Assembly: GCA_965644295.1 (NCBI GenBank)
Contig: CBFFRP010000244.1
Coordinates: forward strand, 35,381 to 99,380
Direction of reading: 5' to 3'
Origin: Paraphysomonas bandaiensis
Lineage: Eukaryota; Protista; Chrysophyceae
DNA length: 64,000 bases
Shown here: one piece after another, positions 2,846-64,000 of the stretch
Layout of the letters: the number at the start of each line of letters is the position of its first letter
How positions within the stretch are numbered: the first letter of the stretch is position 1
Program-made: the position numbers and the translations under genes
The notes under the pieces: model-generated
Database searches by the model: none
The model's input: the letters and a program-made list of their open reading frames with translations, nothing else
What the model was told of the DNA's origin: nothing

Positions 2846-2938
2846 GCTATGGAAAGATAACTCTATCCCCTCTGCTGCCCACGACTGCTCACATGGAGGT
2901 CTACTATATATGAGTGTGCATACATCAAGTCTGCTGTC

Positions 2939-8448: not shown

Positions 8449-8800
8449 TGTTAGCTTTGGACATTTCACTGAAGTTAACTTTGCTCTACGCGTAAACCGT
8501 AACCTTGCTGTTGAACACAATGCACTTTCAAGTAAGAAATTATGATTATTATTCTGAACACTTCACTACATATTCGTGTAACATATGTTGAAACATCTGT
8601 TCTTATAGCAACATCTGTTTATCATATGTTCATCAGTCAGTTCTATATCTTGTATAGTCACACATCAGTAACTGAATTTAATTCCTTTGTAACTACTATA
8701 ATCACCCGTTACACCTATGAGTTGACTTTACCTATAATTGCACACTGTTAACTCACTTCAATTGCACAATATATATCACATCATATTGCAGAACTCAACA
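8449..8800 (-). repeat. Copia-1 5' LTR
   Basis: Followed on the minus strand by the PBS and a gag-like start (MSKANMVADGSSDEAEEDSKVLKFD). Confidence 0.97.
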
Positions 8801-9108
8801 GAAAACAAATATATATATTTCAAATAAAGTAAAATCTTGTGGACAATAAATTTGATAATGAAATGAATAATGATTCTGACTCGGATTCTTTTACAATGTC
8901 AGAATATAGTATTAATGTTGTTTATTGTTTTCCAAATGATATTAATGCTTTGAAAGAATTGGCAAAACGTTTGAGTTCTACTGAGTTTAATGATACAATA
9001 GTAATAAAAAAATCTATACGTTTTGACCAGCTGTGAAGAATTTTATCATAGGAAAAGAAGATTATGAAACCTAACAATAATAATTATGATAAGTAACTTC
9101 TAATTATG

Positions 9109-9770
9109 TGTTGAGTTTTGCTGTTTAAGCAATTAAAAGCTGTAATTCTAGGATATTGGAAGTATGACGGTTACTGGAGAATACAGTAGTGGTTAACTGC
9201 ATTATGAGAAATAATGAGAACTGAATATATATTGACCATACGAGAAGATAGTGACGATATATGATCGATCGTACTAGAAATGAGTGGTAGTAGAGATAAC
9301 GTGATATATTGTTTATTATATTTATTATAATCTTCTCTTATCTTAACTTGATTAATGAGTGAATACACGTCCAGTTAACTTAGTAAATCATCCAATTGTG
9401 TCATATCTTGACAATCAGTGTCACTTATATTTATATCAATTACAATGCACAGATATAACAACATGCGGCGACCTCACACACAAAACAACATACTCAAATG
9501 ATTGGTTGCGAATCCAAAACGTATCTTGAAAGGATTTGAAGTTCGTTCGATATATCATAGCTGTATTATCAGAAGTAATGAGAACTGAATATATATTGAC
9601 ATACAAGAAGATAGTGACGATATAAGATCGTACTAGAAATGAGTGGTAGTAGAGATAACGTGTTTTTTGTTATTTTATTTATTATAATCTTCCCTCATCT
9701 TAACTTGTTTAATGAGTAAATACACGTCCAGTTAACGTAGTAAATCATCCAATTGTGTCATAACTTGACA
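9109..9770 (+). mobile_element. Two family-B LTR copies (9109-9413 complete, about 9561-9770 truncated)
   Basis: Both match the reverse complement of 1147-1416. Outer flanks TTATG/CTATG match at 4 of 5 positions. Confidence 0.75.
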
Positions 9771-10272
9771 CTATGGCATCAGAAGGTCAGAAGGTAATTA
9801 AATATTTTCAAACTACTAGTCGTGTAAACAGACATTCTAAAATGGCGAAGTGGCTAGTAACTGATTGAATTGATAGACTTCAATGCAATGGTATGATTAC
9901 TAGATATTTGTCACAAGGATCTTCCAGGGTTGACGGAGCCGCTAATTGAATTGTGTGGTCAGTCACGCACCGTGGTAGGTGGTAGTATAGTAGTATACCA
10001 CTGGTACATCTTGTAGCCTTCAAACGGTCGTAAGCTTCATCTAGCTACTGCGAAATAATTAAGCATTAAGTAATAGTTCGACAAGAGCATGTATTCCTTG
10101 TTCCATATAGACGAATTGTAGGTTGTAGGGGGGTATGTTTGCAGTTGGAAAGCTCGTAAATGCAATGTGCCAGTGGGAAACTGTATGTATTATAGGAAAC
10201 ACACAAAGTAAATACCTACTAAAAATCGTATGTATACATCTCACACTACGCTTCCATTCACATTAATATATG

Positions 10273-11818
10273 CTAATCAGTATTAGAACTCATATCATCA
10301 TCTTGCTGTCCTACTGTATCGTTCTTGTCAATGTCGTCGATTCGATTATGTAAATCTACAGACTTGGTGCTGTCATCTGACTCCACAATATTGGGGCCAA
10401 CATGACTTTCCGGTACTACTACGTCGTCGACGGACTTATCTCCAACAGCATCTACATCAAAGAGTATGGGAAGTTGATTTTGTGTACTATTTCTCCTCCG
10501 CCTTTGCGAAGCGATGTCATCGTTTTCTTTAGAGAGCGTCGAAGTAGCAGAATTCAACCAGTTCCCAGTAGCAGTACCAATATCTATTGGCAGCTGAATG
10601 TCCTTAAAAGTTCCTCTTCGAGTAGGTGCATTACTATCCCCAGAATGTGATCTACCACTTGTTCCCTCTTTCTTAGAGAAGAACGAGCCAGATAACAGCG
10701 GCCTAATACCATCGGAGAGACCTCCGGCTGCATGCTTCAAGAGCCCTCGTATAGGTCGAGACTCCTCGTTGATTCGGTCCTCACCCTCTACTGGGGGAGA
10801 TAGTAGGGGGAGGTTGCATCTGCAAGTGGAGTACTTTGGCCCTTCAACTGTCCCACCGCATCGGAAGCACGTCGGCACCATATAAGTGGTAGTGGCGGAG
10901 GTATCCGGCTCTCCGGTGGGGAGGCTCCATACATCTAACAGAGTTCCCCTAGTGGTATTAACAGTGGGAACATCAGGTGGAAGAGAAGGTTTGCTATTCT
11001 CCGAAATTTGTTCATCACACAAATCTCCAGCTTCAGGTGGTACCGGATTCGATACTTCTTCACTTCCGACGTCACTTACCATGAACTGTCTCGCTTTGCT
11101 GGCAGTATTAAGACAATCGTTAGATTTCTGTATGGTTGTTTCAGCTATTAATCTTTCACTCTCACAAGAAATGCCATCAATGTTTCTCTGTAGAACTTGA
11201 CAAAGACTGACTACACAATCTTCTAGTCTCACATTTGACTCCGTCAATCGATTTGTATTCTCCTCCAGATCAGATATTCGCGATCGAAGAGATTTGACCT
11301 CCTTGATCAACAGGCGTTGTTGTTCTGCTGCTTGGGTGACTTTATCATCCAGGCGAGCCTTTCGAGAACGCAGCGAATTTATCTTTTCCGTGGCATCAGT
11401 TTGTAACTATCACACAACATGTAAGCTCATTTGGAAATTAAGCGGAAAGATAGACCTTTTCGGCATAGCTTTCTATACTTTTCCTGGTTTCTCGCTCTTC
11501 TTCCAACAATTTCTCTAATTCTCGAATGTATGCAGACTGTAATAGACATAAAACACGATCATATGATAGTGCGTGCATGACCTGATCGTCCGGCGTGGGT
11601 GTCTCTGGTGCCTCTGTGTCGGAGGGATTCAGGTCACTGACTATCTGTGTAAGAGTTCTTCCTAGCTGCGCGACTGCAGATAGTTCACTCTTATCTATCT
11701 GAGTGGTGTGATCTACCTCCTGTTCACTGGTCAGTGGATCATGCAGTGGGAGGGAGTCAGTTACCTGCAGACTGTTTATAGCCTCCTGAAGAGAACGAGC
11801 AGCCGCTTCCACCTGCAT
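10273..11818 (-). CDS. Unknown coiled-coil protein with a small Cys motif (CFRC..GPKYSTCRC)
   Basis: Two ORFs (11438-11818 and 10273-11310) join in frame through a GT-AG intron at 11455-11407. Confidence 0.75.
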
Positions 11819-11922
11819 ATCAGACGACGGACTGCACTATGAAATCTTGTGTTGAACAATTATACGGCTGGGCTGGTGTTTAATGTATGAGTTTGACGAG
11901 CAAACGGAGTATATATATGCGT

Positions 11923-11963
11923 GCATACAGCAGCATACAGCATACAGCATACAGCATACAGCA
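11923..11963. repeat. Heptamer tandem repeat (CAGCATA)n
   Basis: Seen directly, in the divergent intergenic region. Confidence 0.9.
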
Positions 11964-12081
11964 GTATAGGCGTCTCCTACACACGTGCACCATATCTATG
12001 GAATGTGCTGTGTAGAACTGTATTGTAATGCTGTATGTAGGTATACCATGCCACAGGATTCTATTCTTCCATAGCTGTACG

Positions 12082-12177
12082 GTACGTATAAAACAGTATA
12101 AGACGGTATACGCCGTATAGTCCAACTGTGTACGTATAAAACAGTATAAGACGGTATACGCCGTATAGTCCAACTGT
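12082..12177. repeat. Perfect 48-bp tandem duplication
   Basis: GTACGTATAAAACAGTATAAGACGGTATACGCCGTATAGTCCAACTGT twice (12082, 12130). Confidence 0.95.
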
Positions 12178-12414
12178 GTGGGAGATGAGAATACAACTTA
12201 TACAGCACTGTATACAGCATATAATCGGCAGTTACACGATGTCTGTATGAGAGTGGACACTACGCTGCTGTATAGTCACAGTATAGCCTGCAGATGTAGG
12301 TGTCCAGTGCAGTGGGGGCGACATACACACACATACATACACATCGAGAGATCGGGACCCACTTCAGCACTGAACTTAACGTCCGCATACATCTCATCTT
12401 AACAAATCAAAGAG

Positions 12415-14742
12415 ATGGACGACATAAAAGATATCATTGGTACTATAGTGAGGGGGTGTGCGCAGGGCGGAGTCGTAGTCTCTGAGGTGCTTGCTGCCTT
12501 TGTTGCTCGTACGGTAATACACACACACGTATATATATACATACACACTGCTAACGTGCCTTTAGATCGTGGAATCAAGCACAGACTCCTTTGCTCTTGA
12601 TCGTGCGCTCACTTCTGAGGCGAAAGATGAGGTTATCATTCAGAGCATCGAGAAGCTGTTGGAGAAAGACAGTCCGCAGCTTGAGACTATGAAGATGCAG
12701 GTAAATACACTCATTGCGGTCGTTGTCGATACTATTTTTATATTAACTCTTTACAGGTTGACTTTGATTGTTCATTTTTAGAAGAAGACGCTGAGTTCCA
12801 AAAAACTATACGACTTCACAAAAAAGTTGTGTCCACAGCAAGGGCGAACATTGCCGAATTAGAAATGCAAGACGCGAATGACTTTGAAGCACTGACGACA
12901 TTGTACCGCAAAATATTTCGATTTCTTTTAGAATTTGTGCCGACAGAAAAATCTATACAGGACCGGGCCATCGAGAGGGAGGTGGCTGCAGCGTTAGAGA
13001 GCGTGTTTCCTAGGATTGGTCTAAAGGCGTTTGTGCAACTCTCTTACGAAGAAAAGAACGCGCAACTGATGGAACTTGCCCGCATTGTATTTGGCATTCG
13101 TCTTTTTAATCGCCATCAAGATAGAGGGGGGGCTGGTATCGATAATATTGATTCGAAATGTCCGGAATTAGCTGGAAGTATTGATCGCGAAATTCGAAAA
13201 GAAGCCGAATCTGTATCAAATTTGTGCAGTAAGTATCAGGAAATCATTGTGAAAACGCATTTGCAACGACGTCGTCTTGAAATGAAAGCGAGAGAGAAGA
13301 TTAACGGTAGAATAAACGATTGCAAAGACGAAGATATTAAGGGTGATGATAGCGTGGATGATGTGGAGATGGAAGACGAAGAAGTGGGTGACTGGCTGTT
13401 GGAGCGATGGTCACATGAGCTGGCTAATAGACGTCAGTATCTCGCATTTCTCAGAAGTTTGCAGGAAGAAGTGGGTGCTAGTGTGGCAAAGATCACTGAT
13501 TTGATAGATACAATTCAGGACGAATTGATCAACCTGAGTGGCTTGGTGGGGGGCCGGGCGTCGGTCGCGAAGGAGCAAGTTTACCCACGATTTGATGCTC
13601 TTGCCAGTACGTGGTTGACTCTTTGGGAAGAATATAACCTTTTGAGGGCCAGGAATAACACCTACATGAAATTAAAACTCTATCGATCATCCTATGTCTG
13701 TGCATTGACGGAACGCATGTATTCCACATTGGGAAGAATCATGGACTTGAAGGGAGATGTTGTGTCACTCGCTGCTGCAAAGAGTGGTGCATATGATGAT
13801 GAAAAAGCCACTATGACACCATTGGACAAGAAGCATAGCATTGAAGATAAATCTGGCAATAAAGGTGGTATGTCAAAGGTAGATGACGAAGACAACGACG
13901 GGGATGGTGGACCTGACGACATGACTGCTGAAGCAAAGACTGACAGTGCAAACAATGAATCTTCTATTCCGAGGGTTTACAATGATCGAGATATTGTACT
14001 GGAGACCATGTCAGCCAAAGGTGCTGCTCTACTTTCTGTACACGATACTCCCGATTTTATGCAGCTACCTCTTGAGTTACAAGGGTTCTGTCCATGGACA
14101 ATGGTGCACGCCAACGGCCTATTGGTTCCAGGAAAACCTGCTCTTGGAGTAATTCGATATGAAAATTTATACTACGTTTGCGAACATAAAGTCGCCATAA
14201 AAGCCTTTATGGATGATCCTGCTTATCATATAAAGAAAATCAAAGAAACTGCTCAAAAGAGTCCTGAATATATTCATTTGCTACGACTTCAAAACTACTT
14301 TCCTTCAGCCTCCATTGCTCGCCTCGTCGAAAGACCGGACTTTGATGCGCAAAGTGGAAGCAAACCAACGACCAAAGATGCTAGCACAGGAACTCCTACC
14401 CATTTCATTGAGAAGAGAATTGATCCTCATTATCATTGGAATGAGTGGGTATTGCGCCAGCGGGTGTTGAAAGTTGTAAATTTGAAAAATTGTCGCACTG
14501 TTGGACAACAAACAGATCAATCACATTTCAAGCGCGACAGCGAAACTCAAGTGTATTTGCCACGGGCGAAAGAAACTCAGACTAAACGTGACCGAGGAAC
14601 TAACCCAGCTACTAAGTCGGTGTATATAACTGGACTGCGAGGAAAGCTATCAGAAGATGCCAAGGCTGTTTCCAGATACATTTCTCCTGATGTTAGCAAC
14701 AAGGAAAGAGTTCGTGCAGTTACCCTCACTTTGGATCCATAA
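12415..14742 (+). CDS. CFAP206: Cilia- and flagella-associated protein 206
   Basis: Introns 12514-12565 and 12701-12756 restore the frame. Motifs REVAAALESVFP, GIRLFN, LELQGFCPWT..GLLVPGKP, TPTHF..HWNEWVLR. Confidence 0.93.
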
Positions 14743-15104: not shown

Positions 15105-16608
15105 AAGGGCTTGGTAACCATTAGTGACCCATTTATGAGTGCCCAGTTTCTGGCAATTACAATGGCAACTAAAATGACCACTAATACCGAACTAGATAAT
15201 AATTGCTCAAATATTTTTTATGAATGTTTTTGAGTTCAAATGCGATGCATATTTCCAATGATTTTTAGAATTTTTGGGCATGGTTGGGGCCATTGGCCTC
15301 TTATCAGCATTGAAGGATCAATTCTTTCGTTAGAATGAGAAAAAAAGCGTGATGATTATCATCACTACACGTAACAGAGTCATTGATAAATTTGATTCGA
15401 TATGATGAAGAAAAGTAAGTAAAAGTATGAAATTTTCAAGTAGTATATATCATAATGTGAATGGATGGAAGATAAATAATACGATGACATATATGGTAGT
15501 CACTTATGCCGTTATATTTGTTCTATATTGTGAGCTATTACTACTTTACCTGATATATATATATGTCGCACATAAAACAATTAAAGTGTTTATTGCAATT
15601 GAATGTCTTATTATTAGCAATAGGAGTTTAAGATTTAGTGCTTAACTCTGATATCCTATTGTGCGTCACCTCAACCACTTTCGCCCTATCACTCAAAGCA
15701 AATGCAGCGAGCAGGAGAAGAATGTCGACAAACCTGACATCTTCTGACTTCTAGATTTTTGAGTCCTTAAGGTGAACAGCCTGGATGCTTGACTTTAGTA
15801 GAGGCAGCCCAACAATATCCCGGATGCCTATTTATTTGTCAAGGCCCAAAGACGTCTACACAAATGAAACGTATTTGTGTCCCTTGTACCACACAAGTAT
15901 TTGGCTATGAGTGGGCAGAACAATATCTGCTACTATATATATGCAACTCACGTTAGTTTCCCGGAGAAATATCTCCGGTACTTGTTCCCCAGAACACCAC
16001 GAAGAGAGGCGAGTCCAACTTTGTGGAGGGTAAAGTTATGTACTTTTAAGTAAGAAATTATAATTATTAATTTAAGCACTTCACAGCTTATTCGTGTAAC
16101 TCACGGCGAACACCTGTTCTCAGCAACATGTGTTTATCATATATATGTTGAGGCTTACTATAGCAAACACCACGAAGCAGGAACTTCAATTTGTCGAGTG
16201 TGTTGTTGCTCACAAATCTATTTTCTAACTCTTATATATATATATGGCAATAAGTTTGCCTCTGATAATGCGAATGCTTCCACGAAGTAGCTGTAGAGTT
16301 GCATGAACATTGTTTAGAGTTTCTTTGGAGAATAAAGGAGATACTATATATATCGTTACAATTTAATACACTTAATACTATATAACATGTATCAAGTACC
16401 AGTAATTATATACTAATATTTTGTAATTTAATCATTATAATTGGACTTGAAAATATTATTATATTTTACTTTAGCTAGCAATATATTGTCGACTGGCCCT
16501 GGTAATTACCACTAATGGGTGCCCAGTTACCGGAAATAATGGCTTTACTATTAATTGTAATTAATCACATCGATTGTAATTAATTGTATTACTATTAATC
16601 AGACCCTG
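15105..16608 (+). mobile_element. Non-autonomous hAT-like DNA transposon carrying a nested insert of about 560 bp (15599-16158)
   Basis: Termini AAGGGC.../...CCCTG with an 8-bp TSD TAATTGAG/TAATAGAG (7 of 8). Subterminal GTGCCCAGTT motifs. The body matches 26840-27800 and 36654-37350. Confidence 0.75.
15599..16044 (+). repeat. Repeat family D, copy 1 (decayed coding fragment)
   Basis: Matches the reverse complement of 16770-17080 and 48025-48114. Followed at about 16045-16148 by a diverged fragment of the Copia-1 LTR. Confidence 0.8.
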
Positions 16609-20300: not shown

Positions 20301-22662
20301 CCCGCACAATTAGACACGCCGATAGGCACCATCGTATGGGCTCCAGCAGAAGCTTTATAATCACTGCACTCACTATCTCTCCGACTTAAGGTTTTCGAAA
20401 ACACCTGACAATAGCATACACTTAAATTCATATCGAAACTTGCAAAAATCATACCTGGTACACTCTACTTCCAATACCTTTATCATGTAAATGCATTCGC
20501 TCTGCAAGAGTGGTTTTCTCACTTTCTAATGTCCCATTTGCAATCATGCTCAATAAATTATCAGAACTGTCCGAAGATTCAAGAGGTGATCCCACTGCAG
20601 GAGTTGCACTTGCGACATTGCACTTCTCACGAAAATCGATTTTTCCCCATACAACGACCTTATCCGGTATGCTATTAGTATTACAAGAATTTACGTTCAA
20701 TTTAGGCCCCGTGTCGCTACACTTTTCACTCTTAGATTCATCATGAAAATTATCATGTACGTTAGAATCACAATACTTCCCAGTTATGCTGTACAATAAT
20801 GCCCGAGGAATAGATGAAAAGAGAGGAAGCGTGACAGAGTTTGACCTTGCAAAACCGCTTAATATATCTGTGTAAGGAAATGGGGCAAAACTCCCCCATA
20901 AATCTTCCTGGAGTAGCATGACTTCTGTATTGAGTGAAGTCGCATGATTCGTAGCTAAGGACGGCTGTGCTGCAACTGATCCAAAGCTGTTATTCCGCGC
21001 ATGTGACTTCACATTAAGACTATCCCTCCTAGACTGCTGTCCACTTTCGTTCACATGAGATACGTGAGAAGGTAAATTATCAAGTGACCGCCGCTTTCTC
21101 CTCTTTCCTTGCTCAGGCATATATCGAAACTGTGCAGCATAGGTTGTTGTTGTCAGCGGTTTTAGTGCGTCGTCGGCATCCAGCTGCTCTAGCCCCGTCC
21201 ATCTAAAGTCGTTCTTTGGAGGACCATTCCATCCATCAAAAACTTGTGATTCCGAATACTTTGTTTTCGCAGTCATCGGAGTTTGAGCGACCCCGGACAT
21301 TTTCATATGCAGTGCCATAGAAGACCTAATAAAAGATTATTTCACGACAGAAAAAAAATATTGCACTTGCCTTGTGTCTTTTCCTATTAGAATATACTGC
21401 AAATTAATCCAGTGAGGCACTTCATAAAATCCGCCTACGCCATGATCTTTCGGGAGAACATGAAAAAGAGGAACGACGTGAAGTGGTGGCTGGGAGAGTG
21501 AGACTAAATCCATTCCTATTCCGGTGTCCATCATGCGCTGCTTGGTAATCTGTGCAAGCTTCGGGTCAACTTTAAAATAGCCCGAGCCAGCTGTGACCAT
21601 GACGATACTGTTTCCTGTCCGCACGAGATCACGGTCCATGTAATGTTTATCTAGAACGTTGAAAGTCACATTGATGGCTTCTAGCATATTCCCTTCCGCG
21701 GCCCCACTGGGAACAGTAATGGTGCCAGTAGACGATGGCTTGGAGGGGGAGTCAGGCATGTCTCCATTCACATTTGGGAATGGCACTTTCCAATTCAGAG
21801 CCTTTGCAAAATCCCAGAATTCCGCCTTAAGATTTCTGATAACAATTGATTTGTCATACACTGTCGAGTTTTCTAACACAACTTTAAAGTAATCTTGGTA
21901 TGAAACCCGTTCGGAGGCATCTGAGACGGTCTCCTCGGTGGAAATAACTTTATCACTATCAGCTTTTCCCTTCAGACGAAAGGTTCTTGCAAAAAACACT
22001 ATTGACAAAGAGTGAGTAACATCCTTGCTTTTCCACCTATCTAGAATAGGATCCACGAACATGTGTAAAAAGCGTTCGAAATACAAATTTCCATTCCTCT
22101 CCATTTCCCACATTTCCGATGATATCTGAATTAGCCAATAAATTCTTGCAGAGCGCGAACGAAATACAATGTTTGTCTTCGGTGTTATGATGCCAGACTT
22201 CACGTACTTTCTTTTCGTTTCAAGTTCTTGTATCTGAGCTTGCACATTTTCAATGCTCACCGACTGTCCACTGTACATTATTCTCCCGACAATGGCGTGT
22301 TTGAATCGCAATATATGACCGCGCTGAACAAATTGCCTTTTGCATGCTAATACAGCAAACTCTACTTCAGCATCTTCAGAGGCCACAGCACTGACCATAA
22401 CACGAGACGACAGTGAGTTCAAGCTGAGTAATTCCGCCACAAGTTTGGACACCATAACCTCATATCTATTCCCTCTTGTGGACGTCACAGAGGTTACTTT
22501 CAACACCAGCTGATCATCCTTACTCTCTAGGTTCGATATCTGTACGTAGTCGCCCTCTGATATGGAGGGAGCGGTCTCGCTGCTTATCTCAGGGTGCTGG
22601 AGAGATATAGCGTCATCATTTGACTTGTTGTCTATGCGCACTGTGTACGTCCTCTGCGTCAT
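17324..22662 (-). CDS. DEPDC5: GATOR1 subunit DEPDC5/Iml1
   Basis: IML1 motifs FRSRSARIYWLIQISSEMWE and GNMLEAINVTFNVLDKHYMDRDLVRTG; RRRWAYAF; C-terminal FHFAIHWIVC. Introns 21370-21326 (GC-AG) and 20454-20405. The first in-frame ATG is at 22662. Confidence 0.92.
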
Positions 22663-24629
22663 GACTCTCACTCGATGTCCCCCTACATCAGACACAGCAT
22701 ACTCTCCAGCTCTGCCTCTCTTGAGTATGCGTGTGTGTATATGTATCTGGGCATGAAGTCAACTTCGTCTGCTCCTCTATACATACATACACTCCGCTCT
22801 ACAGAACCCTCTGCTATGACTACATGAAATACCCCCTATACACTTTGTATACCATGTGCGTGATTGACTGCACATAAGATATGATGAGTATACATACGGC
22901 ACGTATTCTTCAGTATAGTAGTTGACGATGTATGGAGTTGGTGGGTATCTTGCATATCTATCCATGATATGACAGTGTCCCTCACTCATAACCGTGCAGT
23001 CAATACATATGCATCGCAACTAGACGTCACTACTTGGTGCAATGACGACAAGTAGCATACATACTTTCTAATATTTTGAGTAGAAGGAGAAGGACTATGT
23101 TTCATTCAAGCAAATGTCTTATTTATTCTCAGGCCATATTCATATCTTGTAACTTAGAGCACATTGAGCTATACATATAACATTATATATATGATGATTG
23201 ATGTGAAGAATTCAAGGAAGTTAAATGTTTCATAATAGCGAAACAAGTCTATCCATTTGCATGCATTCCATACCTAACGGCATAGATATCTATCGATCAC
23301 ACTCACTGTCAGTTTGCCATACCTTCATATTGCATGTTTGCTTGAGATGTATTGAGTACAAGAAGAGAATACCGCAACGTCAGATGGGGGAAGCAGGCAC
23401 TGCATGTAGTGATAACTAGGACAGGGTTGTCGAATATAACTTAGGGTTTTGTAGGAACGCACAATTTGGTCACATCATTTAACGAAACCCCGATAAGAAA
23501 TGAAAGAAGAGGCGGGAAATCGATTCGCTGCTGAAACACGCCCTAGGATTATGATAGTAGTTTGTTATTGGGACACACCAAAATTAATATAAAATAATAT
23601 GATATGATAGTGAGTAGAGTAATAAATGTATATATAATAGAAGTATAAGTGCATGTAAGGTAGAGATGAAGTTTCTGTGGAAGTGTATCATAAGTAATGT
23701 TAAGCAAGTATAGCGACTTGCATGAAAACTCTCAATGGCACTGCAATAATAGCAATGCTCTGTTTCACACAATATTGGCCATTCAGTATCCGATTCAGAC
23801 AGATAAATACATAAATACGATCGCCATAATTTTATTTCTGCAATAACTACAACCAAACCGTACAAGTAGTTAAAGCTGGTCCTTGCAACTCATAAAAAAT
23901 AATATATATACCAGGAATTAGTGATATTGAACAACATATTATGATAGTGTTGTTTGTGTAAATACGATTACAATTTACAATCATATACAATAGACACTTT
24001 GGTCTAAACCATATATATCTGCTGGCAACGGAACTGCCGGTCAGAATCGTGTTGCTACATTTGATGAAGTCTATGTAGAAACAAAAAAATGCATACTTTA
24101 TATCTATATAGTTTTTCCTGCTCTTGATTAATACTTGTAGCACTAACAATTCTTCCACACGATATAGCAGCATACAGAAGTAAAATAGTGGTACGGAATA
24201 TATATTATATATCTACGGTAATGACTTTGCGGAAATCTGTAGAATGATCAAACGATTCGTCGTCATAAATTTATGCCTGTACTAGAGAAGGGAAATGCAT
24301 ACATGAGTAACCATAACAAACTAAACACACAGCTGTATGAACTCGTGATGTGTATATGTTACACATATTTATATATTATTCACAAAGCATGAATCACTGC
24401 AGCACAAGCAAATATTAACATTGCATCCCTCATTACGTCGCCACAAAAGGAACATATGCTACTCAATATTTATGGATCGAAAAGGTGAAACATAATACTG
24501 ATACTCATGTAGTATTTGATATTTACATATAGAGTTATTACGAACCCGTGAATTTATTTTCATGGAAGACTCGCCACTGGTAGTACCATAGATTGCTGAG
24601 GACTTTGTATTACCCACTTCTGATGGCTC

Positions 24630-53135: not shown

Positions 53136-53754
53136 CTAATATGTAATTCCAACGTCCAGTTCGTCCTATTCCGCCCGTGTAATTAGCAGCACTCGTCACA
53201 ATGAAGTTTCCGTTCTCAATGTTCATTTGTTTATCACATATATACACTTATTAATTGAAGGTTTCTTCTTAATTTTTATCACTGCCAACCTAGCTTACGA
53301 AAAATAGTTTTAGAGTCATGCTAAGATCACTTCTATTACAAGTGCTTGTACTTGCTGAACTATACACTATACCATATCCAGTAGATAGATTTTTCCTATG
53401 AGTATGCAAATATGTAAAGGAGTTAGAAGTTATAATAAAACAGTGGAAACTGTTGGAATACGTATGGTTCTCTAAGATAGTACTGTAGAATACGTTAAAT
53501 ACAATGTGAAAAACAGTAATACGTAGTCAATAGTCAAAAGGTGCTATATAGCTATAACTGTGAAACTGAAGTATTATATCATGACGATTCAAGATACGGA
53601 AGTTGAGCAGTGGTTAACATGAACGAAATAATTTATCATGTTGTTGACATGTGCTACATGACAACACACACAATTGTGTATACAATCATAATAAAGTAAT
53701 CTATCTAGTTTGACTAACTTAAACTTCTCTTACAACGATCTTAATCATCTGAAA

Positions 53755-54161
53755 ATGGTCTTTAGTCAATATGGTAGCGAATGCGGAGGAGAGAAGGAGG
53801 ATAGAGCTGATGTTCCATGGTTCGACGAGAGCAACGTTGAACAATGGATCGAAGACTTTGAGACGTTCCTTATGAGAAAGGAGCAGAGTGAGGTGGCTCT
53901 AGAAAGGCCACCAGAGGAAGAGGATTTCGGAATTCAACCCCTGAATAGTCTTGAGACCAAGTCCTACAAAGAAGCGGTGGACAAGTATTGGAAGGCGAAT
54001 GCAATTGCCTACTCATACTGCAGAGAGGCGGTGAAGCGATCTCCGAAGGCGCTGCAGAAGTTTCATCTGAAGCACAAGGAGTTCAAGGCAGCTGAAGGAA
54101 GAGTTAATAAGTTCAGCGCCAGAGAGATGGTTAGCACTCTTAAATCGTGTTTTGAAGGGGG
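53755..54161 (+). CDS. Copia-2 gag, N-terminal part
   Basis: ATG lies inside the LTR. MVFSQYGSEC..VPWFDESNVEQWIEDFETFL..LKSCFEG. Confidence 0.85.
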
Positions 54162-55355
54162 TATGAACAACTCAGGTCTTGCAACCTAAGATCACTGAAA
54201 AGATATGAAATGGTTGTTTATCGAAACAACAAAACAGAAAGCTATAATAATAACTCTTTAAGAAACCAACAGCCAGAAACACAAGCTCCCCTGTATCCTG
54301 CAATCTAAAGCTCCCAATAGACAGATCAGTCAACCAACTATGTTAATTTCATAGAGAATTATTATTAAAAACTAAGTTACAAGCGAAACAAAAGACAGAC
54401 CCCTCTAGTCTAAAGACTCCTCCTCATACACAGGACATTGAATGCAACCACAACCGTACAATGTGCTCATACATGTACTACACTACATACGATTCTTATC
54501 CTACATCGTTTATAGTCAAAAACTCCCTGAAATACGCCTAAATAGGTCCTTTCCAAAAAACTCCGATTTTTGAGTCCAAAAACCCAAAAATCCCCAATTT
54601 TTTGAGAATTGCAGAAAATCGCCGATTTTCGAGCCACAAACACCCAAAAATGACAATATTCGAATCCACAAAAATTGCAAGCACATTTCATGACAACGTG
54701 AAATACACAATCGCCAACTCATGCATAATACCGACAAAATGCAATCGGGTTCAAAAGCTTACAATCGAACGGTTAAATATCATTTCCTTGCAAGAGTGTG
54801 TACTTTAGACTGGACCATACAAATACACTCATATTCAGATCACTAACATGCCCATGACACCTCTACATCTACGTCCAATGGCACCTTACGAATTCCTCCC
54901 CATTCCGGAGAAAATCAACGGTGTATGGCAATGGAGGAATATTCGTATATCAGAATCCAGAACAATGATCAAGCACATAGAGCTGTTCAAAACCATCAGA
55001 AAGCTTCTCATAATGATGGGTGGACTACGAATATCGCACATGCGGTACCAATCAATGCTTCCTGACCCAAAACGCTATGACACCGACTACCGTATGGATA
55101 TAGGCGTAAACCGACGGGTAGCAATCGCGTAGATCAAAGAAAACGTGTGTTCGAGGGTAAATCCTAGTTGTCTGTCGTCTTGCCCTCGTAATAATAATCT
55201 GTATCTCTTGTTGTCACCAATCTTATACAAAACAAGCTACATATACCCTACATATTATGTTATCATATCGTTATTGCATTAATATAGTTATCAATATTAT
55301 TATGATGATGTCATTAAACGTGTTAAAGGGTGTTATAAAAGCCCACGGCTTTACA
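54162..55355 (-). repeat. Gypsy 3' LTR
   Basis: Minus strand TGTAAAGCC...GTTCATA, preceded by the PPT GGGGGGGGAGAAAGGG. Confidence 0.95.
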
Positions 55356-55385
55356 TTACCCTTTCTCCCCCCCCGGATGCCGTAG

Positions 55386-58300
55386 CTACTCCTGAATAAT
55401 TTTGGGATAAGCCGCAGCGAGCGACGCATCAACCAAAATCATGCGAGCAGGGTCAAAATCCTTCTGGGACCCCCAACAATAGACCAAATAGTTGTCGAAC
55501 GCATAGTTGGCACCGTTAAGGTTAAATTGAGCGCTAATCTTACGTCTCGAATTCTTATGATACCAATGAGTATACGTAAATTCCATGACGTACTCAGCCG
55601 TGTCGAAATCAGGTAAACCAAGACTCTCATACCAAAGGTCACCGTAAAATCTGAGATCAACATAAACAGTATCTCCAACCGAAACTGTTGTGATATTCTC
55701 TTTCCTCATTGAAGAGATAAAACGCTTCGCCGTAAACGAGTCATACGCAAGATGCCGCAGGTAAGGCCTAGACTCACAGAAATCATAATACGCTTCACAC
55801 TGAATATCCGGTGTCCATGGAATGTCCAGGATATCGCCGTCTGCATACTTCACCTTGAAAACCATCGTAGATTTAGTACGTGAATCACCCGTATATGAAA
55901 GAATCTCCTCCACCTTAAATTGTTCATGGTCTCGCATCGCCGCCTCAATAGCCGATTCCTTATCTCCGAAAAATGGCTCAAGATCAGAGACAGAGTATTC
56001 CCGAATCCCCCCGGTAAGAAGATTTCGAATTTGAACATCATTCTTGTATTGCCGTACCACTTCGAAAGGACCCTTCATCCTCGAGGATAATTTCGGATGT
56101 GGTTTAGCACCAGCGTCGAACATAACAAAATCGCCTGGACAATACTGGTTTTGTTTGGCAGGATCCAAACCCGCTTCCGCTCGTTTCTCAACTAGAGACT
56201 TCTGGTAATCTGCTGATATCTGGCGAACTAGAGCTAAGTAATCGTTCAGCCTTTTCAACAGCTGATGAGACGGATCATTGTCTCTCCCCTGGGCGGCCAG
56301 AAGATTCTTATAAATGGAATCCTGGGACCCAAACGTCAGTTCGAATGCAGAATACCCCGTCTCACTACTCTCGTGGGTATTCAGAATGAACATGATAGTG
56401 GCAAGTAACAGTTCGTCCTCCAAAACAGCATCCGCCTCAATTCGCTTGTCAAAACAAATAGCACGGATGTGACGAACCACTTCCTTAATAATACGCTCAC
56501 ACCCATTGACATGCCTGTTGGCGATACTAAAAACATGACGGAGTCCTGACAACTTAACCAGCTCTGCGAAAAGCTCTGATTTGAGATCCGGACCCATATC
56601 TGATATAATCATATCCGTGAGCCCGTATGTACACCAGCACTTCCATACTGCTGTAGCCAAATTGATAGCCGTCATTCCTTTCACCGCATATAGGTACACC
56701 AATTTCGTAAACAAATTAACCATGACCACAATATGCGTGTAACCAGATTTAGAAACAGGTGTAATAGCAACCGCGTCAATTCCCAAAGCACTCCTGGAAT
56801 GAGGCGGTTTTAAATGTCTAGTGATAGGAATCAATCGCTGCTTCAGCTCTCGCCTATTCTTCTGACAGTTGATACATTCGTCCACGAAGTCTGCAACCAC
56901 CTTGAAAGGCACGCCGTGTCCCGGAAATTGCTTACACAGACGCTTCCACGTCTCTTTCGCACCCCAGTGTCCTACTTGCGCGTTGTGAACCTCCTTGATA
57001 GCCTGATGATAACCTATCCTCTGCTCCTCCGTAGGTGGCGCGATCTCCTGCACTTCGTCCTCAAAATCGTCTTTTTCAAAGATGTTATGCAGCGTCACGA
57101 AGTTCACTTCATCTGAGTCGAAATCGTCACTTTCGTCCACAAATCCGGACAAATACAGCAATCTTGACAAGCAATCCGCAACCACATTGTTCTTCCCTGG
57201 GATATGACGAATCAAAAAGTCAAAATCCTGCAAATAAATTCTCCATCGAATTATCTTCGCAACTTCTGATGCCTCCATCCACACAAGGTTGTTGTGGTCC
57301 GTCTCGATTGTAAATTTCTTTCCTCTCAGATAAACGAAAATTTCTTGACTGAATAGAATATACCAAAACCCTCCTTCTCAATAGTACACCACTTCAAGGC
57401 TTGCTCTGACAATTTCTTGGAACAGATAGCAATAGTTTGCTGTTGAATCGGACTAGACCCAGTTCCCTCAACAGTCTGGAAAAGAATGCCTGCCACTCCA
57501 TAGTCACTGGCATCTGTCCTAAGTGTCCACTCAAGATCATAATTCGGATAAAACAAAGCACAAGACTGTTGCAAACCACTCTTATAGTTTTCAAACTCCT
57601 GCCTATAATCGTGCTGCCATGTCGTTTCTTCCCAATTAAAACTACTCTTAGTCATATCCGTAAGATGTTTGACCAAATCTGAGTAATTCTGAACAAATGG
57701 AGCAAAGAATACTCCCAGACCCAACAAAGATCTAATCTTCTTACATCTATTTCCATTCTCTGGAAAAGGAATCTTCAATAAAGCCTCTTTCCTATCGTCC
57801 GTGAGCTCGAAACTATTGTGCCTTACCAAATAGCCAAAAAACTTGATCTCCCTAAATCCTAACCAGGTCTTTGCAAATTTCAACACAACTCCATGTTCAA
57901 TGCATCTATCCAGGAAAATCTCCAGCTTCTTATACGCATCATCAAAATCATGTGCCAATAACAGAACATTATCAAATATACACAGCGCCCATTCCAGATC
58001 TCCAAACAATTTGACTACCGCTTCTTGCAACACACTAATCCCTGGAGACACTCCCTCCGGAAGGAATAAAGGCTGAAATTGGCCCCACGGTGTTTGAACT
58101 GACAATTTTTCAGATGTGTTCTCATGCAACCTGATCTGATGGAACGCATTCGTGAGGTCAATGTCCATAAATATCTTATAGCCAATAATACGATCCAACT
58201 CATGTCTTACATTAGGAACTGTATAGTGTGGACTTGGAATGTACTTGTTGATTTGCACGTAATCCCCACAAATCCTAATAAAAGGTTTCGTGGCTTTTGG

Positions 58301-59323
58301 CGCGATCACCAAACAAGAAGCCCATGGCGACCTACTAGGAACATAGATGTAACCACACAGTCTCCTAAACTCCTTCTCCGCATCCTCATATAATCTAGGA
58401 TTTACGGGTCTTGCTTTCGGCTTGATCCTAGGAGGCAAATTCTCAGCGAACTTGATGTTCAACGGATCCACTCCTTTTATACCTTCCCACCGCTCTGGAA
58501 CAAATACCTCTACTCCCTTAGTCCTCAATAACTCCAGCACCGGTCGCGCTGCTGAGAACTCTGGAGACACGTGCTCACCAAACATATCCTCGAACTCGCT
58601 CAAAGCTTCCTCTCTAGTCTTTCCAAGAAAACTTGAGGCAAATCCGAACTGCGAAGGGTCCGGAACATCCAATTCTTCAGGTGCTACCTCCCTACTACTG
58701 TCACACCACGGCTGCAATAATTCTTCAACCGCATTCAACAACAAATCATCCTCGGTAATATCGTCCTCACGCCTTTTAATAAAACTTACTTCTGATTCAA
58801 TTCGTTCAATAGTCCTTCCTTTAAGCATAAATAGAAAATAATCCCATAAATCCTTAACGATAGCCGGAAGTCCAATAATAATATCGTTGCTACCCATATC
58901 AGCAACAATGAAATCCCCGTCATATAACACGAACTCTCCCTTGGAGTCTTCTCTCTCAAACCTCAATTTTAATTTCACTACAAAACTACACTTCATTCTC
59001 GACGTTTTATCGGCAAATCCTATAACTGTTTCTTTTTTTATGACTTTGTTTTCACACACATGATTTCTAAACGTCTCAAACAAATCCTTGGAAATGAAGT
59101 TAGATGTTAGGGCTCCAGTGTCGAACAATATTCCACGCACAGATATTATATAGTTATCATCACATACAATGCTTCCCCCAGAATGAGCCAATGTCAAGTC
59201 TTTTCGTTCTCGCGTATTACAGACATTCATCAAATTTCTGAGGAAAACTCGACTAACAGTCTCAGGATCATTCAAACCGTACAATATTTCTTCGTGATCC
59301 TGCGAACCATTAGCCTCGCACAT
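55386..59323 (-). CDS. Gypsy pol (PR-RT-RNase H-IN-chromodomain), with one frameshift near 57333
   Basis: PR ILFDTGA; RT RICGDY, DIDLTNAFHQI, CIFDNVL, FFGY; RH TDASD, EKEG, ETDH, VADCLSR; IN HHCC, GIDA, ISDMG, NGCE. Adding one T gives FSFYLRGKKFTIETDHNNLVW. Confidence 0.92.
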
Positions 59324-59326
59324 TTG

Positions 59327-60797
59327 TCAAGTCACTCCACCAGGCCTCGGCAAAATCTTTCGCGGCCCTTTGGAATCATCTGCCATCATCTGAGACAGCT
59401 TCTTCATCATCCATTTCCGGGTTTCCGTTGCAACTGCTCCATTATGACCCTGAACATGCTTACATTCCTTCCCTTTGTAGCAGTTCCCATACAACGCATA
59501 CGCAACGCAACCACGGGTTGGATTAACAGTCTTCTCCAGGTTCATCACCTGTTCTATAGCTTCCTTATCAGACTCTGGTTCGCCGAGCAACATCTCCTCA
59601 ACCTCATTCTCGAAATCATCATCTGACATCCCGTCATCCTTGACCACAACTATCGGGTCAACCTCCTTGTCATCTAAATCACTGTAGAAATCATCCTCAA
59701 CTCGGTCCGCAAACTGCACGTTGTTTAAAGATTTCGGTTTCTCCTTTGCAACGTATCCATTGTCCCGATTCCTCGAACTCCTTTGAATTTGCTTCTTACT
59801 GAAATCGGACCCTTCATAAGGCACCAATCTGATGTTCTTGGACGCCTCATAATGCTCACTCGCCTTGGAAACGTATGTATCCAGAAACTCTTCAACATTA
59901 CCATAATTAGTATCCGTCACCCTTGGAATCTCAGCCAGAACTCGTTTGTTGTAAGACTCGTCGATCAACTCCAAAAATACTTGAGCCGATCCAAACTCTT
60001 TTCCTCCAACCGGCGGACACTTAGTACTATTGGCCTCCATCATGATAGTAAACGTACGCATAAAAATACTCTTTCGCTTCAAAATCTCTTGAAAAAAACA
60101 GCTCATGTGTATTCGGCCGCACTGATTTCCAATCCAGTGGCTTAAAATATCTCAGCGCGTATCGCAAAGTCTCAATGAACTCAACTTTGGACAACACCTT
60201 GGTCTCCTTAGCCATCATCTCACAGAATTTCTGAGCACTCAACTTAACAAACATTTTATCCGTCAAGCTATTGTTGAACATAAGCAGGTTCCGAACACGC
60301 CTGCTAACTATCTGGGCTGGCTCAAGCTTAATCCCATTGATCTGTTCATATTCAAACCATTGGATGATAAACTTTGTAAAATCACTAAGCTCCATCGAAT
60401 CCAGAAAAATATGCTTATGGGATGGCTTTTCAACATTGATGATGACATGCTTTGGAACCTCCATTCCCTCTGAAGACTCAGCCTCCCTCATGAATACAGA
60501 TGTCCTTCGCTCTTTCTTCTTGCCTTTGTCGTCGGCAGCCCTGCCACTCTCTCTGGTATGTCCCTGCTGCTCTTCACGCTGGTCACGGATGGCCTCATCT
60601 ACTTCCTTCTGAGCTTCCTCCAGCTCATTAACTAAAACTTCTTCATTAATAGACATTCTGGACTCCAGATTATCTACCCTACTGGCAGTTGCTACACACA
60701 ACTTAGTGACGTTCTCCAAATTGAGAGCAATTCCCCGTAACATTTCCTTAACTTCATCTAACTCAGATGAACCAACAGGACCCTCCGAATCAGACAT
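59327..60797 (-). CDS. Gypsy gag (coiled coil, capsid-like region, CCCH finger), with one frameshift at the T7 run 60098-60092
   Basis: ORFs 60027-60797 and 59327-60106 join if one T is removed (HELFF|QEILKRK). Confidence 0.75.
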
Positions 60798-60865
60798 TTC
60801 GATATATATCTGTAATCTACAATAATGATATCTTCACTTACGTGTTTTACCGTTAGTAAATTTAC

Positions 60866-62059
60866 TATGAACAACTCAGGTCTTGCAACCTAAGATCACT
60901 GAAAAGATATGAAATGGTTGTTTATCGAAACAACAAAACAGAAAGCTATAATAATAACTCTTTAAGAAACCAACAGCCAGAAACACAAGCTCCCCTGTAT
61001 CCTGCAATCTAAAGCTCCCAATAGACAGATCAGTCAACCAACTATGTTAATTTCATAGAGAATTATTATTAAAAACTAAGTTACAAGCGAAACAAAAGAC
61101 AGACCCCTCTAGTCTAAAGACTCCTCCTCATACACAGGACATTGAATGCAACCACAACCGTACAATGTGCTCATACATGTACTACACTACATACGATTCT
61201 TATCCTACATCGTTTATAGTCAAAAACTCCCTGAAATACGCCTAAATAGGTCCTTTCCAAAAAACTCCGATTTTTGAGTCCAAAAACCCAAAAATCCCCA
61301 ATTTTTTGAGAATTGCAGAAAATCGCCGATTTTCGAGCCACAAACACCCAAAAATGACAATATTCGAATCCACAAAAATTGCAAGCACATTTCATGACAA
61401 CGTGAAATACACAATCGCCAACTCATGCATAATACCGACAAAATGCAATCGGGTTCAAAAGCTTACAATCGAACGGTTAAATATCATTTCCTTGCAAGAG
61501 TGTGTACTTTAGACTGGACCATACAAATACACTCATATTCAGATCACTAACATGCCCATGACACCTCTACATCTACGTCCAATGGCACCTTACGAATTCC
61601 TCCCCATTCCGGAGAAAATCAACGGTGTATGGCAATGGAGGAATATTCGTATATCAGAATCCAGAACAATGATCAAGCACATAGAGCTGTTCAAAACCAT
61701 CAGAAAGCTTCTCATAATGATGGGTGGACTACGAATATCGCACATGCGGTACCAATCAATGCTTCCTGACCCAAAACGCTATGACACCGACTACCGTATG
61801 GATATAGGCGTAAACCGACGGGTAGCAATCGCGTAGATCAAAGAAAACGTGTGTTCGAGGGTAAATCCTAGTTGTCTGTCGTCTTGCCCTCGTAATAATA
61901 ATCTGTATCTCTTGTTGTCACCAATCTTATACAAAACAAGCTACATATACCCTACATATTATGTTATCATATCGTTATTGCATTAATATAGTTATCAATA
62001 TTATTATGATGATGTCATTAAACGTGTTAAAGGGTGTTATAAAAGCCCACGGCTTTACA
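60866..62059 (-). repeat. Gypsy 5' LTR
   Basis: Same sequence as the 3' LTR. The four LTR-internal ORFs in the track are identical in both copies. Confidence 0.95.
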
Positions 62060-62063
62060 GGGG

Positions 62064-64000
62064 AACACAAAACAAGATTAGTGCTCTGCTTGCTCAGTTT
62101 GGATCATTCGAGATGAAGCCAGGGGAGACCGCGAAAGAGTATGTACTGCGTTTTGAGCTGCTTCTTCGTGAACTTCAGGCGCATAACCAAACGGTAACGG
62201 AAGAATCAAAAATTAGTAGGCTGAAGGAGGGAATTATCAGTGATGAATATGACGGTTTGAATTATGCCCTGTATTTAATGCCCGATGATGTACCATATGA
62301 ATTGCTATCCAAACGTATCGAACAGTTCGACGACACCAAGTATGGGAGGAAAATCATAGAGAAGAAGCGCAAGAGCACGGAGGAGCTGAATCATATTGAA
62401 AAGCCTCGAAAGAAAGAGAGAGTATCTACAAAGAGGAAGTGCACTTATTGCTCGAAGAAAGGTATAATACACAATCATAATACAGAACAATGTAGGAAGA
62501 AAAAGGGGGAAACGAAGGGACAAAGACCGGGCAGTAAGGAATATACAGGATGCAGAGTATGCAAATCCAAAAACCATCGCGCGAACGAATGTCCCCGAAA
62601 TTCGACTGGAAAGACCAAGAAACCCCAGAAATCTGGGAAGGTTTTCACATTCGAGAATATCCGCAGAGGAGGAACCGAGTCTGACTCGGAGTCCGAAGCG
62701 AATATGCTTTATGACTGTGCTGTTGATATATATGATAAAAGTGACACATGTTGTATGATTGGTACTGCTGAACACTATACATACATAGATACATGCTGTT
62801 CATCATCAATGTTCTTGATGAATGATGTGACCATGCTTGACACTCATATGAATACATCAAAGGTGATAAACGGATCTAAGAAGGGATCAGAGATTCATAT
62901 CACAAGTGTGGGTTCCCGTGGAGCATGGAGAGACATAGAAATTTCAGATCAGATCAATCGATGCCTGTGCTCCGGACGTAAGCTGAACGAAATGGGCTAT
63001 CGATTCACGGTGTGGTATGGGATCCAAATTTATGACTGTAATACCGGTGAGCTGGTACTGGAGGGACCCATGAAAAATGGAATGACTGCAGTTCCAACTC
63101 AGCAGCTGTTGGAGCTTCCAGATGTGTCTACACCGAGTAATTGTGAAGTAAATCTTAGCGATAGGACTGGTGAGGACGAGCTGGAACTGCTGCATAGGAG
63201 AATGGGCCATTTCAACAAAGGGGCTCTAACGGAGGCACATAGAAGGATGTTGTTCACGGGCTCAAATCTGCAGAGGAAGCACCTATCGAAGACTGCATTA
63301 AAAAAATCTTGTCTCTGTAGCATATGTGCCAGATCAAAGATTACGAGAGTTTCGTTTCACACAAAGGAGGATACGGATGTCAAGCCGGACATATCGGCTG
63401 ATGTGCAAGTATTTCTGAATACTCCCGCTCGAGGTGATGAGCGCTACGTGATCAAACTAACTCATCACCCGAGTAGGATGTTCTGGGTAAAAGGCGTAAA
63501 CCAGCGTACTAAAGAAGAAGTGATTCAGTTTTTTAGAGAGGTGTTCGAAGGAGAGATTAGGCAATATAAGCTGAGAGTGGACCACTACCACGCTGATGGA
63601 GCTGGAGAACTCATAAATCAAGAACTTAGGAGCTATTTGAGATCACAAGGCTGCTACAAACATACTTGGTCTTCAACAGATAGTCCGGAAATGAATGCAG
63701 TAGAGGAGCGAAAATTCAGGACTGCATCAGAGATGGCGTTGGCGATGTTGTTGCAGTCAGGCCTACCGGTTCCATTCTGGTTAGACGCGTATCATGCTGC
63801 TCGCTATACACTGATCAGACTCCCTACAAGGACGGACAGAGGATACATGTCCCCATATGAGTATGTCACGGGTCAGCCACCCAGTTTGAAATATTTTAGA
63901 GTATGGGGGTGCAAAACTTATATATTGACACCTAAGGCGGACAGGCGAAAGGACTGGGACGATAAATCAAAGATTGGATACCTAGTGGGATATTCGGAAG
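62064..64000 (+). CDS. Copia-2 gag (continued)-protease-integrase, open to the window end (absent from the ORF track)
   Basis: Hand translation: FEMKPGETAKEYVLRFE, zinc knuckle CRVCKSKNHRANEC, YIDTCCS (PR), HRRMGH..CSIC, ISADV, HADGAGE, EMNAVEERK, FRVWGCKTY. No stop codon. Confidence 0.92.

Follow-up and report, generated by a model that had tools for sequence, protein, structure and literature searches.

Does a retroelement that breaks the Ty3/gypsy pattern at many diagnostic sites represent a damaged copy, or does it belong to a lineage with rules of its own? This question is raised by a long terminal repeat (LTR) retrotransposon of 7,898 bp on the minus strand at positions 54162-62059 of a 64-kb stretch of Paraphysomonas bandaiensis DNA, which as a whole is referred to here as the window. 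A sequence-only reading had described it as a young gypsy-like element departing from consensus at nearly every diagnostic site, and had taken this accumulation for a coherent and possibly undescribed lineage rather than random decay. Following a comparison with its relatives, we consider it probable that the element is a member of a large and old clade of chrysophytes and plankton metagenomes, in which the unusual sites are conserved, selected clade characters and in which a palindrome next to the 5' LTR serves self-priming.

The insertion and its relatives

The boundaries and the setting of the element are given by the following features:

60866-62059, minus strand: 5' LTR (sense), 1,194 bp, TGTAAA at the start and TTCATA at the end (TG..TA), identical to 54162-55355
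54162-55355, minus strand: 3' LTR, repeat identical to 60866-62059
62060-62063, no strand: target-site duplication GGGG on the 5'-LTR side, from flank comparison
54158-54161, no strand: target-site duplication GGGG on the 3'-LTR side, from flank comparison and the rejoined host frame
about 53700-54161 and 62064-64000, plus strand: host copia-type Gag-Pol frame interrupted by the insert, with Pfam gag_pre-integrs and SH3_retrovirus
55356-55374, minus strand: polypurine tract GGGGGGGGAGAAAGGGTAA, directly 5' of the 3' LTR; relatives share ..GGGTA(A/G/C) / TGT

The feature is a recent insertion nested inside a copia-like element: The LTRs of 1,194 bp each are 100% identical and GGGG stands on both flanks, which bears out the young insertion with 1.2-kb LTRs and a perfect target-site duplication claimed before. 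If the element and one GGGG are removed, the flanks fuse into an open copia-type Gag-Pol frame of at least 801 codons; since the excised flanks rejoin in frame, the element ends and the 4-bp duplication are confirmed independently of the repeat search. This host frame comprises two CCHC knuckles, a protease and an HHCC integrase and extends past the window end. Because it is open over this length without the insert, the host copia-like element also looks young. Elsewhere in the window we found neither further copies of the element nor solo LTRs. The identical LTRs or the boundaries might in principle stem from a collapsed or chimeric assembly, in keeping with the two frame breaks discussed below, which both lie in homopolymer runs as is typical of long-read errors, and with the terminal redundancy of many metagenomic relatives. 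We give this explanation practically no credence: The flanks yield the long copia frame only with exactly these ends and the 4-bp duplication, and independent assemblies of relatives show the same architecture, including 4-bp duplications (ACAA, TGCT, GCAT).

A protein search with the open reading frame (ORF) that spans protease, reverse transcriptase (RT) and RNase H gave 180 matches, of which 120 are listed at 33-75% identity, from ENA and JGI metagenomes and from EukProt. A scan of JGI metagenome contigs provided 277 confirmed loci, and a HMMER search of 1.84 billion cluster representatives returned 1,208 50%-cluster representatives at E<=1e-30; an exact-sequence match for the protease-RT ORF of the window was absent from the assemblies index. 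Members could be traced to the named hosts Ochromonas danica, Synura sphagnicola and Pedospumella encystans, and further members derive from lake and marine plankton metagenomes. Against the PDB, the clade profile matched the Gag-Pol of Ty3 best (7e-102), followed by cauliflower mosaic virus (6e-57), a gammaretrovirus (1e-27) and foamy virus (1e-22). Between its two LTRs the element has the Ty3/gypsy domain order protease-RT-RNase H-integrase, as given by the order of the Pfam matches and a DTG protease motif upstream of RT.

Judged by domain order and sequence, the element belongs with the chromodomain-bearing Ty3/gypsy elements. It shares with these chromoviruses a Gag preceding the Pol enzymes, LTRs starting with TG, a polypurine tract, a short target duplication and an integrase whose GPY/F module is followed by a chromodomain homologous to the canonical one. 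The clade differs from them by xFDN instead of YxDD, PEG instead of PFG and an altered motif A in the RT, by D34E or D33E instead of D35E in the integrase, by a CCCH instead of a CCHC Gag finger, by the lack of a tRNA- or Tf1-type primer site, and by an extra Tudor-like barrel after the chromodomain. In the clade tree, a canonical chromovirus used as outgroup, which neighbours a clade member on a relative's contig and has YLDD and a plain chromodomain, sits on a very long branch. Full-text literature searches yielded no description of a Ty3/gypsy clade with such traits, Repbase and GyDB lying outside this scope; to that extent the clade is apparently undescribed, as had been suspected. The published account of the diatom GyDi elements is silent on motif details.

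The claim of deviation at nearly every diagnostic site has to be narrowed. It stands for YxDD, D35E, the tRNA- or Tf1-type primer site and the CCHC finger, but 4-bp duplications and an in-frame gag/pol stop are ordinary in Ty3/gypsy practice (gypsy, Skipper), so that the GGGG duplication, though present, is not in itself a departure. Likewise, the TG...TA ends exist in the element but do not mark the lineage: The LTRs of relatives start with TGT and, among distinct sequences, end with CA in about 60% and with TA in about 30%.

Unusual sites in Gag and Pol

The first part of Pol contains the sites that set the RT of the element apart:

57326-59323, minus strand: Pol part 1 with protease (FDTGAL, 59108-59125), RT and the N-terminal part of RNase H; Pfam RVT_1, RT_RNaseH_2 and RT_RNaseH
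58136-58165, minus strand: RT motif A, DIDLTNAFHQ (canonical form D-L-x-x-G-Y-H-Q)
58049-58063, minus strand: RT motif B, LPEGV, in which PEG replaces PFG
57968-57979, minus strand: RT motif C, IFDN
about 57332-57337, minus strand: frame break in RNase H, in a short T run (..KKFS / YLRGKKF..), where the consensus of the relatives is continuous

YxDD is regarded as a near-universal RT signature. The motif IFDN, which had been read in its place, aligns with YLDD of Ty3 in the profile search and is representative of the clade: x[FYHWM]DN is found in 116 of 118 aligned relative proteins, the other two being without this region, as well as in all RT copies of the fetched loci (90/90) and all further 50%-cluster representatives (126/126). 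Motif A of the relatives reads D-x-D-[LM]-x-N-[AS]-F-H-Q, and PEG takes the place of PFG in both their loci and the 50%-cluster representatives. Pfam recorded nothing significant in the protease region of the element. For RT-RNase H, the ratio of nonsynonymous to synonymous substitution rates (dN/dS) in ten pairs amounts to 0.02-0.07, rough values with dS near saturation, by which this part of Pol is under strong purifying selection. Because of this selection and the recent insertions, we infer that the clade RT with its aspartate in motif A, the D-N pair in motif C and PEG in motif B is functional.

The D-N pair in the catalytic loop has a parallel in the D211N mutant of Ty1 RT, in which the second aspartate of YXDD is replaced. 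This enzyme still polymerises in vitro with a preference for Mn2+, its polymerisation rate constant (kpol) is 223-fold lower, and transposition is abolished and partly restored by RNase H suppressors (PMC2148107). Unlike this engineered, transposition-dead mutant of a copia-type element, the D-N pair of the clade is natural and conserved, occurs in gypsy-type elements and is accompanied by changes in motifs A and B.

Could the element simply have decayed or become non-autonomous through chance damage, or could the whole clade be RT-dead and mobilised in trans by canonical elements? The two frame breaks of the element, the loss of transposition upon the D-to-N exchange in Ty1 and the coexistence of the canonical YLDD chromovirus in the genome of a relative speak for such a scenario. 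Against it, the same traits recur in more than 300 diverged relatives, the dN/dS values are low, and relatives with intact long ORFs and identical LTR pairs exist. We therefore rate it as highly improbable, and decay by chance damage appears effectively refuted by the clade-wide traits and by selection. Since the same traits (motif C, CCCH finger, stop junction, C-terminal module and palindrome) recur among the relatives, the earlier notion of a coherent lineage is upheld, and the comparison strongly supports reading the clade-wide oddities as family traits.

Gag and its junction with Pol are organised as follows, the relative L001 with its single 523-residue Gag serving as reference for the alignment of the two ORFs:

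60027-60797, minus strand: N-terminal part of Gag (ORF1), ATG at 60797; residues 12-235 align to L001 Gag residues 5-229
59327-60106, minus strand: C-terminal part of Gag (ORF2), ending with TGA; residues 4-254 align to L001 Gag 228-515
60092-60098, minus strand: frame break in gag, in a T7 run, where the relative is continuous (..HELFFQ..)
59444-59509, minus strand: Gag zinc finger C-x8-C-x5-C-x5-H of CCCH type, with a last spacer of 5 instead of the usual 3
59324-59329, minus strand: gag/pol junction within a common frame, a TGA stop with CAA next to it; presumed readthrough site

The sequence-only reading had overlooked the frame breaks in gag and RNase H, and the element as assembled is not intact; to judge by the runs in which they lie, they would be either slippage mutations or homopolymer assembly errors. 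Pfam found nothing significant in the gag region of the element. The CCCH-type finger, correctly recognised before, is a clade character as well: It occurs in 63 of 75 related gag regions, mostly as C-x8-C-x4/5-C-x3-H, and CCHC in none of the 75, the x5-H variant being a marker of the subclade of the window element.

The UGA-CAA junction within one frame also proved to be as described, and an in-frame stop is usual among the relatives. Their junctions comprise 43 distinct in-frame stops, namely 38 TGA and 5 TAG, the latter all followed by G; C follows TGA in 31 of the 38, most often as CGG (12), CTA (5), CTG (4) or CAA (4). UGA-CGG, UGA-CUA and UAG-G are classic leaky contexts and dominate among the clade junctions. 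Another 23 relatives, about a third of the clade, have a fused gag-pol. With just one stop between gag and pol of the same frame, the arrangement resembles that of readthrough retroelements and related cases (gammaretroviruses, Dictyostelium Skipper, the alphavirus-type UGA-C), and TGA CAA in the element would likewise qualify as one stop in a leaky context. We know of no report of stop-codon readthrough as a clade-wide feature of chromovirus-like elements.

The second part of Pol carries the integrase and a C-terminal module:

55386-57377, minus strand: Pol part 2, frame open from 57377; C-terminal part of RNase H and integrase; Pfam Integrase_H2C2 and rve
56862-56987, minus strand: integrase HHCC, within Pol part 2
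56769-56786, 56589-56606 and 56490-56507, minus strand: integrase catalytic D, D and E, spaced D-x58-D-x33-E
56055-56075, minus strand: SH3-like GPF module, within Pol part 2
55758-55919, minus strand: chromodomain-like domain; hhalign probability 91%, E=1e-6
55389-55733, minus strand: extra C-terminal domain of about 115 residues, a Tudor- or chromo-barrel-like beta-barrel; AlphaFold2 predicted local distance difference test (pLDDT) 96.2

The integrase of the element thus deviates from D,D(35)E. The D(33)E spacing noted earlier is real, but as a family trait it fails, being confined to the element's own subclade: Among 75 relatives, D34E occurs in 61, D33E in 12 and D35E in 2, and in the tree the D33E set is exactly the 10-row clade of the window element (Shimodaira-Hasegawa-like approximate likelihood ratio test, SH-aLRT, 96). 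The chromodomain and the extra domain behind it, both already suggested, are shared by all relatives, the 232 C-terminal residues being conserved throughout at 31-57% identity. Residues 4-111 of the clade's C-terminal alignment match the integrase tail and the Pfam-annotated chromodomain of the canonical neighbouring chromovirus (with the hhalign values given above), so that the element has the chromodomain at the integrase C-terminus by which chromoviruses are defined. In the AlphaFold2 model of the 232 residues (pLDDT 90.9), the chromo-like region forms three strands and a helix. Foldseek gave weak 'Royal family' matches for the whole model; those for the extra domain, weak too, were all to Tudor, chromo-barrel, Agenet or PWWP folds, with the SMN Tudor domain as best match (E=0.11, probability 0.89). 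The models are suggestive of a Tudor-like fold of the extra domain, and the chromo plus Tudor-like tail is likely a tandem reader of modified chromatin.

The palindrome at the primer-binding position

For LTR elements, a tRNA or, as in Tf1, a primer from the 5' end of the own transcript is taken to be the rule. What the element offers instead is a single feature:

60854-60867, minus strand: palindrome TAGTAAATTTACTA, 14 nt, at the position of the primer-binding site; core of 10 nt at 60856-60865, the first two bases being the last two of the LTR

TGG is absent after the 5' LTR, and with it a tRNA-type primer site, in the element and likewise in most palindrome classes among the relatives; tRNA genes or Rfam matches were not found in the window. 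The earlier observation of a palindrome in place of a tRNA primer site was accurate, and the same architecture recurs in the clade. For the count we used 52 distinct related elements whose sequence covers the start of gag and the region before it: A script located a perfect palindrome (12 nt or longer) no more than 400 nt upstream of the gag ATG in 44 of them, and four added by hand raised this to 48, compared with 255 of 2,000 windows taken at random from these loci (13%). In all elements with both LTRs visible (8/8), a perfect palindrome begins with the terminal A of the LTR.

The palindromes of the relatives are perfect, 12-16 nt long, and commonly consist of [C/T]A, five bases, their reverse complement and T. 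They vary between subclades (AGTAAATTTACT, AGTATTAATACT, AGTATCGATACT, AGTGTTAACACT, CAATATTAATATTG, TAATATCGATATTA, AATATCGATATT, AAATATATATTT), yet symmetry is kept via double changes in the six inner pairs, notably at pairs 1, 2 and 5, with A-T, T-A or C-G at pair 1 and G-C, A-T or T-A at pair 5. The outer A..T pair, which includes the last LTR base, is present in 46 of 47 distinct palindrome sequences. Predicted homodimer energies are -13.4 kcal/mol for the window palindrome and -7 to -19 kcal/mol across elements. Because a host-encoded primer would not need a self-complementary site, we conclude that self-pairing rather than a match to a host tRNA is the property under selection.

A second copy of the palindrome (at most one mismatch) was found neither in the LTRs nor elsewhere in the element, for the window as well as for the loci of the relatives. 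Tf1-type self-priming is excluded at this site because each element has a single palindrome and no LTR contains a copy of it: The Tf1 primer site pairs with the 11 nt at the 5' end of the transcript, where R begins, and is not palindromic, and the element lacks a primer site complementary to its own transcript 5' end. The clade would nevertheless share with Tf1/sushi elements the independence from tRNA, a plausible self-derived RNA primer and the need for an RNase H cut in an RNA-RNA structure; the logic of Tf1 self-priming is summarised in PMC5445492.

The nearest parallel, by analogy, is the 'Conserved Hairpin Site' of the fungal GalEa elements of the Ty1/copia type. These have no tRNA primer site, and the sequence behind their 5' LTR is a palindrome only together with the A that ends the LTR (Donnart et al. 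2017, PMC5445492); hairpin-site variants arise by symmetric substitutions, the priming mechanism being unexplained, the RT box is QTDD instead of YVDD, and the Gag finger is non-standard (PMC5445492). As in GalEa, the palindrome of the clade includes the final A of the LTR, as seen in the A..T pair and in 48 of 52 elements. The two groups differ in gene order, with the integrase before RT in copia-type GalEa and after RNase H in the clade, and GalEa has a 10-nt palindrome of the ACTGATCAGT type, both catalytic aspartates, 5-bp duplications and a single ORF. Moreover, GalEa has a second complementary box 12-41 nt downstream. We rejected such a box for the clade, where no downstream complement was enriched: The longest shared word measured 3.87 nt on average and 3.85 nt in shuffles. 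In both groups the loss of the YxDD tyrosine accompanies that of the tRNA primer site, which is a correlation. GalEa is, to our knowledge, the sole other group whose post-LTR site is palindromic.

In the relatives, the CA or TA that ends the LTR is usually preceded immediately by a U5 hairpin. In L019, L022, L029, L036, L038 and L039, a stem between U5 (GGCUAUAU..) and leader (..AUAUAGCC) with about 40 nt on each side encloses the U5 hairpin and the palindrome CAATATTAATATTG; this stem of the CAATATTAATATTG subclade resembles the retroviral primer-site domain, which is composed of a U5-leader stem and the U5 inverted repeat (U5-IR).

Could the palindrome instead be a dimer-initiation or packaging signal, comparable to the HIV-1 dimer-initiation site, while a host RNA primes, for instance a fragment from within a tRNA, such as copia and Ty5 use? 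In favour of this, palindromic sequences classically serve dimerisation. Moreover, structure prediction gives a small hairpin beside the U5 hairpin for the palindrome of many relatives, in one subclade a stem surrounds the palindrome as in retroviral primer-site domains, and internal-tRNA priming is known from other LTR elements (PMC5445492). This explanation appears unlikely to us for three reasons. The palindrome lies exactly where the 3' end of a primer must abut U5 in each of the eight elements with both LTRs; no other conserved sequence follows it, and TGG is missing in most classes; and its sequence shifts between subclades while symmetry is kept, which a fixed host primer would not demand.

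Protein-primed or de novo initiation at a palindromic hairpin without any RNA primer, with D..DN and PEG as reflections of such chemistry, would accommodate the clade-wide alteration of motifs A, B and C, and in hepadnaviruses hairpins do act as origins of protein priming. Pfam found no domain resembling a terminal protein between protease and RT, however, and the nearly invariant outer A..T pair with the last LTR base fits a base-paired 3' end better, so that we assign this possibility a very low probability.

Self-pairing of the palindrome remains the preferred explanation, and the life cycle of the element might then proceed as follows. The LTR would drive the genomic RNA, from which a Gag with the C-terminal CCCH finger as its putative nucleic-acid-binding part would be translated up to the UGA in its leaky context (followed by C). 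Occasional readthrough of this UGA, as the layout suggests, would produce Gag-Pol with protease, RT, RNase H and integrase, enzymes that were identified by homology. Minus-strand synthesis would start without the 3' end of a tRNA at the site where the 10-nt palindrome plus T abuts the last A of U5. Because the only partner of the palindrome within the element is the palindrome itself, priming would most likely involve self-pairing, either between two co-packaged RNAs or by fold-back of one RNA. Cleavage at the palindrome's 3' edge could then place a primer 3'-OH beside U5, following the self-priming logic of Tf1 in a different geometry. Finally, the D33/34E integrase would generate the 4-bp duplications, and the chromodomain and the Tudor-like barrel would probably tether it to marked chromatin. 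That this amounts to a priming mode new for retroelements, with a dimeric or folded-back palindrome turning the element's own leader into the primer, an RT site that co-evolved with it and GalEa as an independent case, is a tentative idea that we hold to be less likely than not.

Several points weigh against the view of an active, self-priming clade. As far as its frames tell, the assembled element is disabled by two one-base disruptions and is not itself autonomous. Ty1 with the D-to-N exchange is transposition-dead, and for the natural DN enzymes it is selection from which activity would follow. In Pfam, Chromo stays below significance at the element C-terminus (recorded for the relative P0106), and the Foldseek scores of the Tudor-like domain are weak. 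The palindrome could serve dimerisation or packaging alongside a different primer, and a simple symmetrical scheme in which both RNAs are cut would leave the template without its primer site. On the other side, the relatives were scored for the canonical states: xFDN is found in all, D35E in no more than the two mentioned and the palindrome in nearly all, but CA ends, which the majority possesses, are canonical. On this balance we retain the conserved, self-priming clade as the probable reading.

Significance and side observations

By its asparagine at the position of the second catalytic aspartate, the clade, a large group that actively transposes and is subject to purifying selection, would represent a natural counterpart of Ty1 D211N, and thus a natural system for how far an RT active site can vary. 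The question of 'hairpin site' priming raised by GalEa in 2017 can now be tested directly in another superfamily, unrelated to that of GalEa. Through the CCCH Gag finger and the chromo/Tudor-like tail, RNA packaging and chromatin-targeted integration become approachable in stramenopile algae. Annotation pipelines built around YxDD, CCHC or tRNA primer sites may under-call this clade, which is abundant in lake and marine metagenomes.

Within the clade, one 103-kb contig holds two members of different subclades within 8 kb (L084:1459-5550 and 7959-12686), one with D33E and the x5-H finger, the other with D34E and AGTAATATTACT as its palindrome, so that a single genome harbours several sublineages. 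In the closest relatives, a spacer of 1.3-1.5 kb separates the stop codon of pol from the polypurine tract and contains a conserved antisense ORF of about 180-280 residues (L001:14196-15047, L085:13348-14127 and L003:13913-14449, all on the minus strand). The antisense ORFs of L001 and L085 share 49% identity (E=4e-85) and have no Pfam match; the window element is without both spacer and ORF.

In L002, a perfect direct repeat of 437 bp (7382-7818 and 15968-16404) abuts or overlaps the LTR ends and far exceeds a target duplication; it may result from insertion into a repeat followed by recombination, or from an assembly effect. In L050, positions 1-5533 equal 8286-13818, in L053 positions 1-1860 equal 8444-10302, and about 30 contigs have terminal overlaps of 55-230 nt. 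Such terminally redundant contigs, or tandem ones of the form LTR-internal-LTR-internal, are expected for multi-copy elements and would also fit tandem arrays or circular forms.

In the remainder of the window, the ciliary gene FAP206 occupies 12829-14742 on the plus strand as a single long ORF. It matches an MMETSP transcript at 100% identity, and its named relatives in Spumella and Ochromonas danica, among others, place the contig in a chrysophyte-like stramenopile. Other genes with long exons are IML1 (21337-22695) and a CH-like ciliary protein. Because FAP206, IML1 and other genes are long ORFs, the stretch, as read from these gene structures, shows a gene-dense, intron-poor genome of a flagellate.

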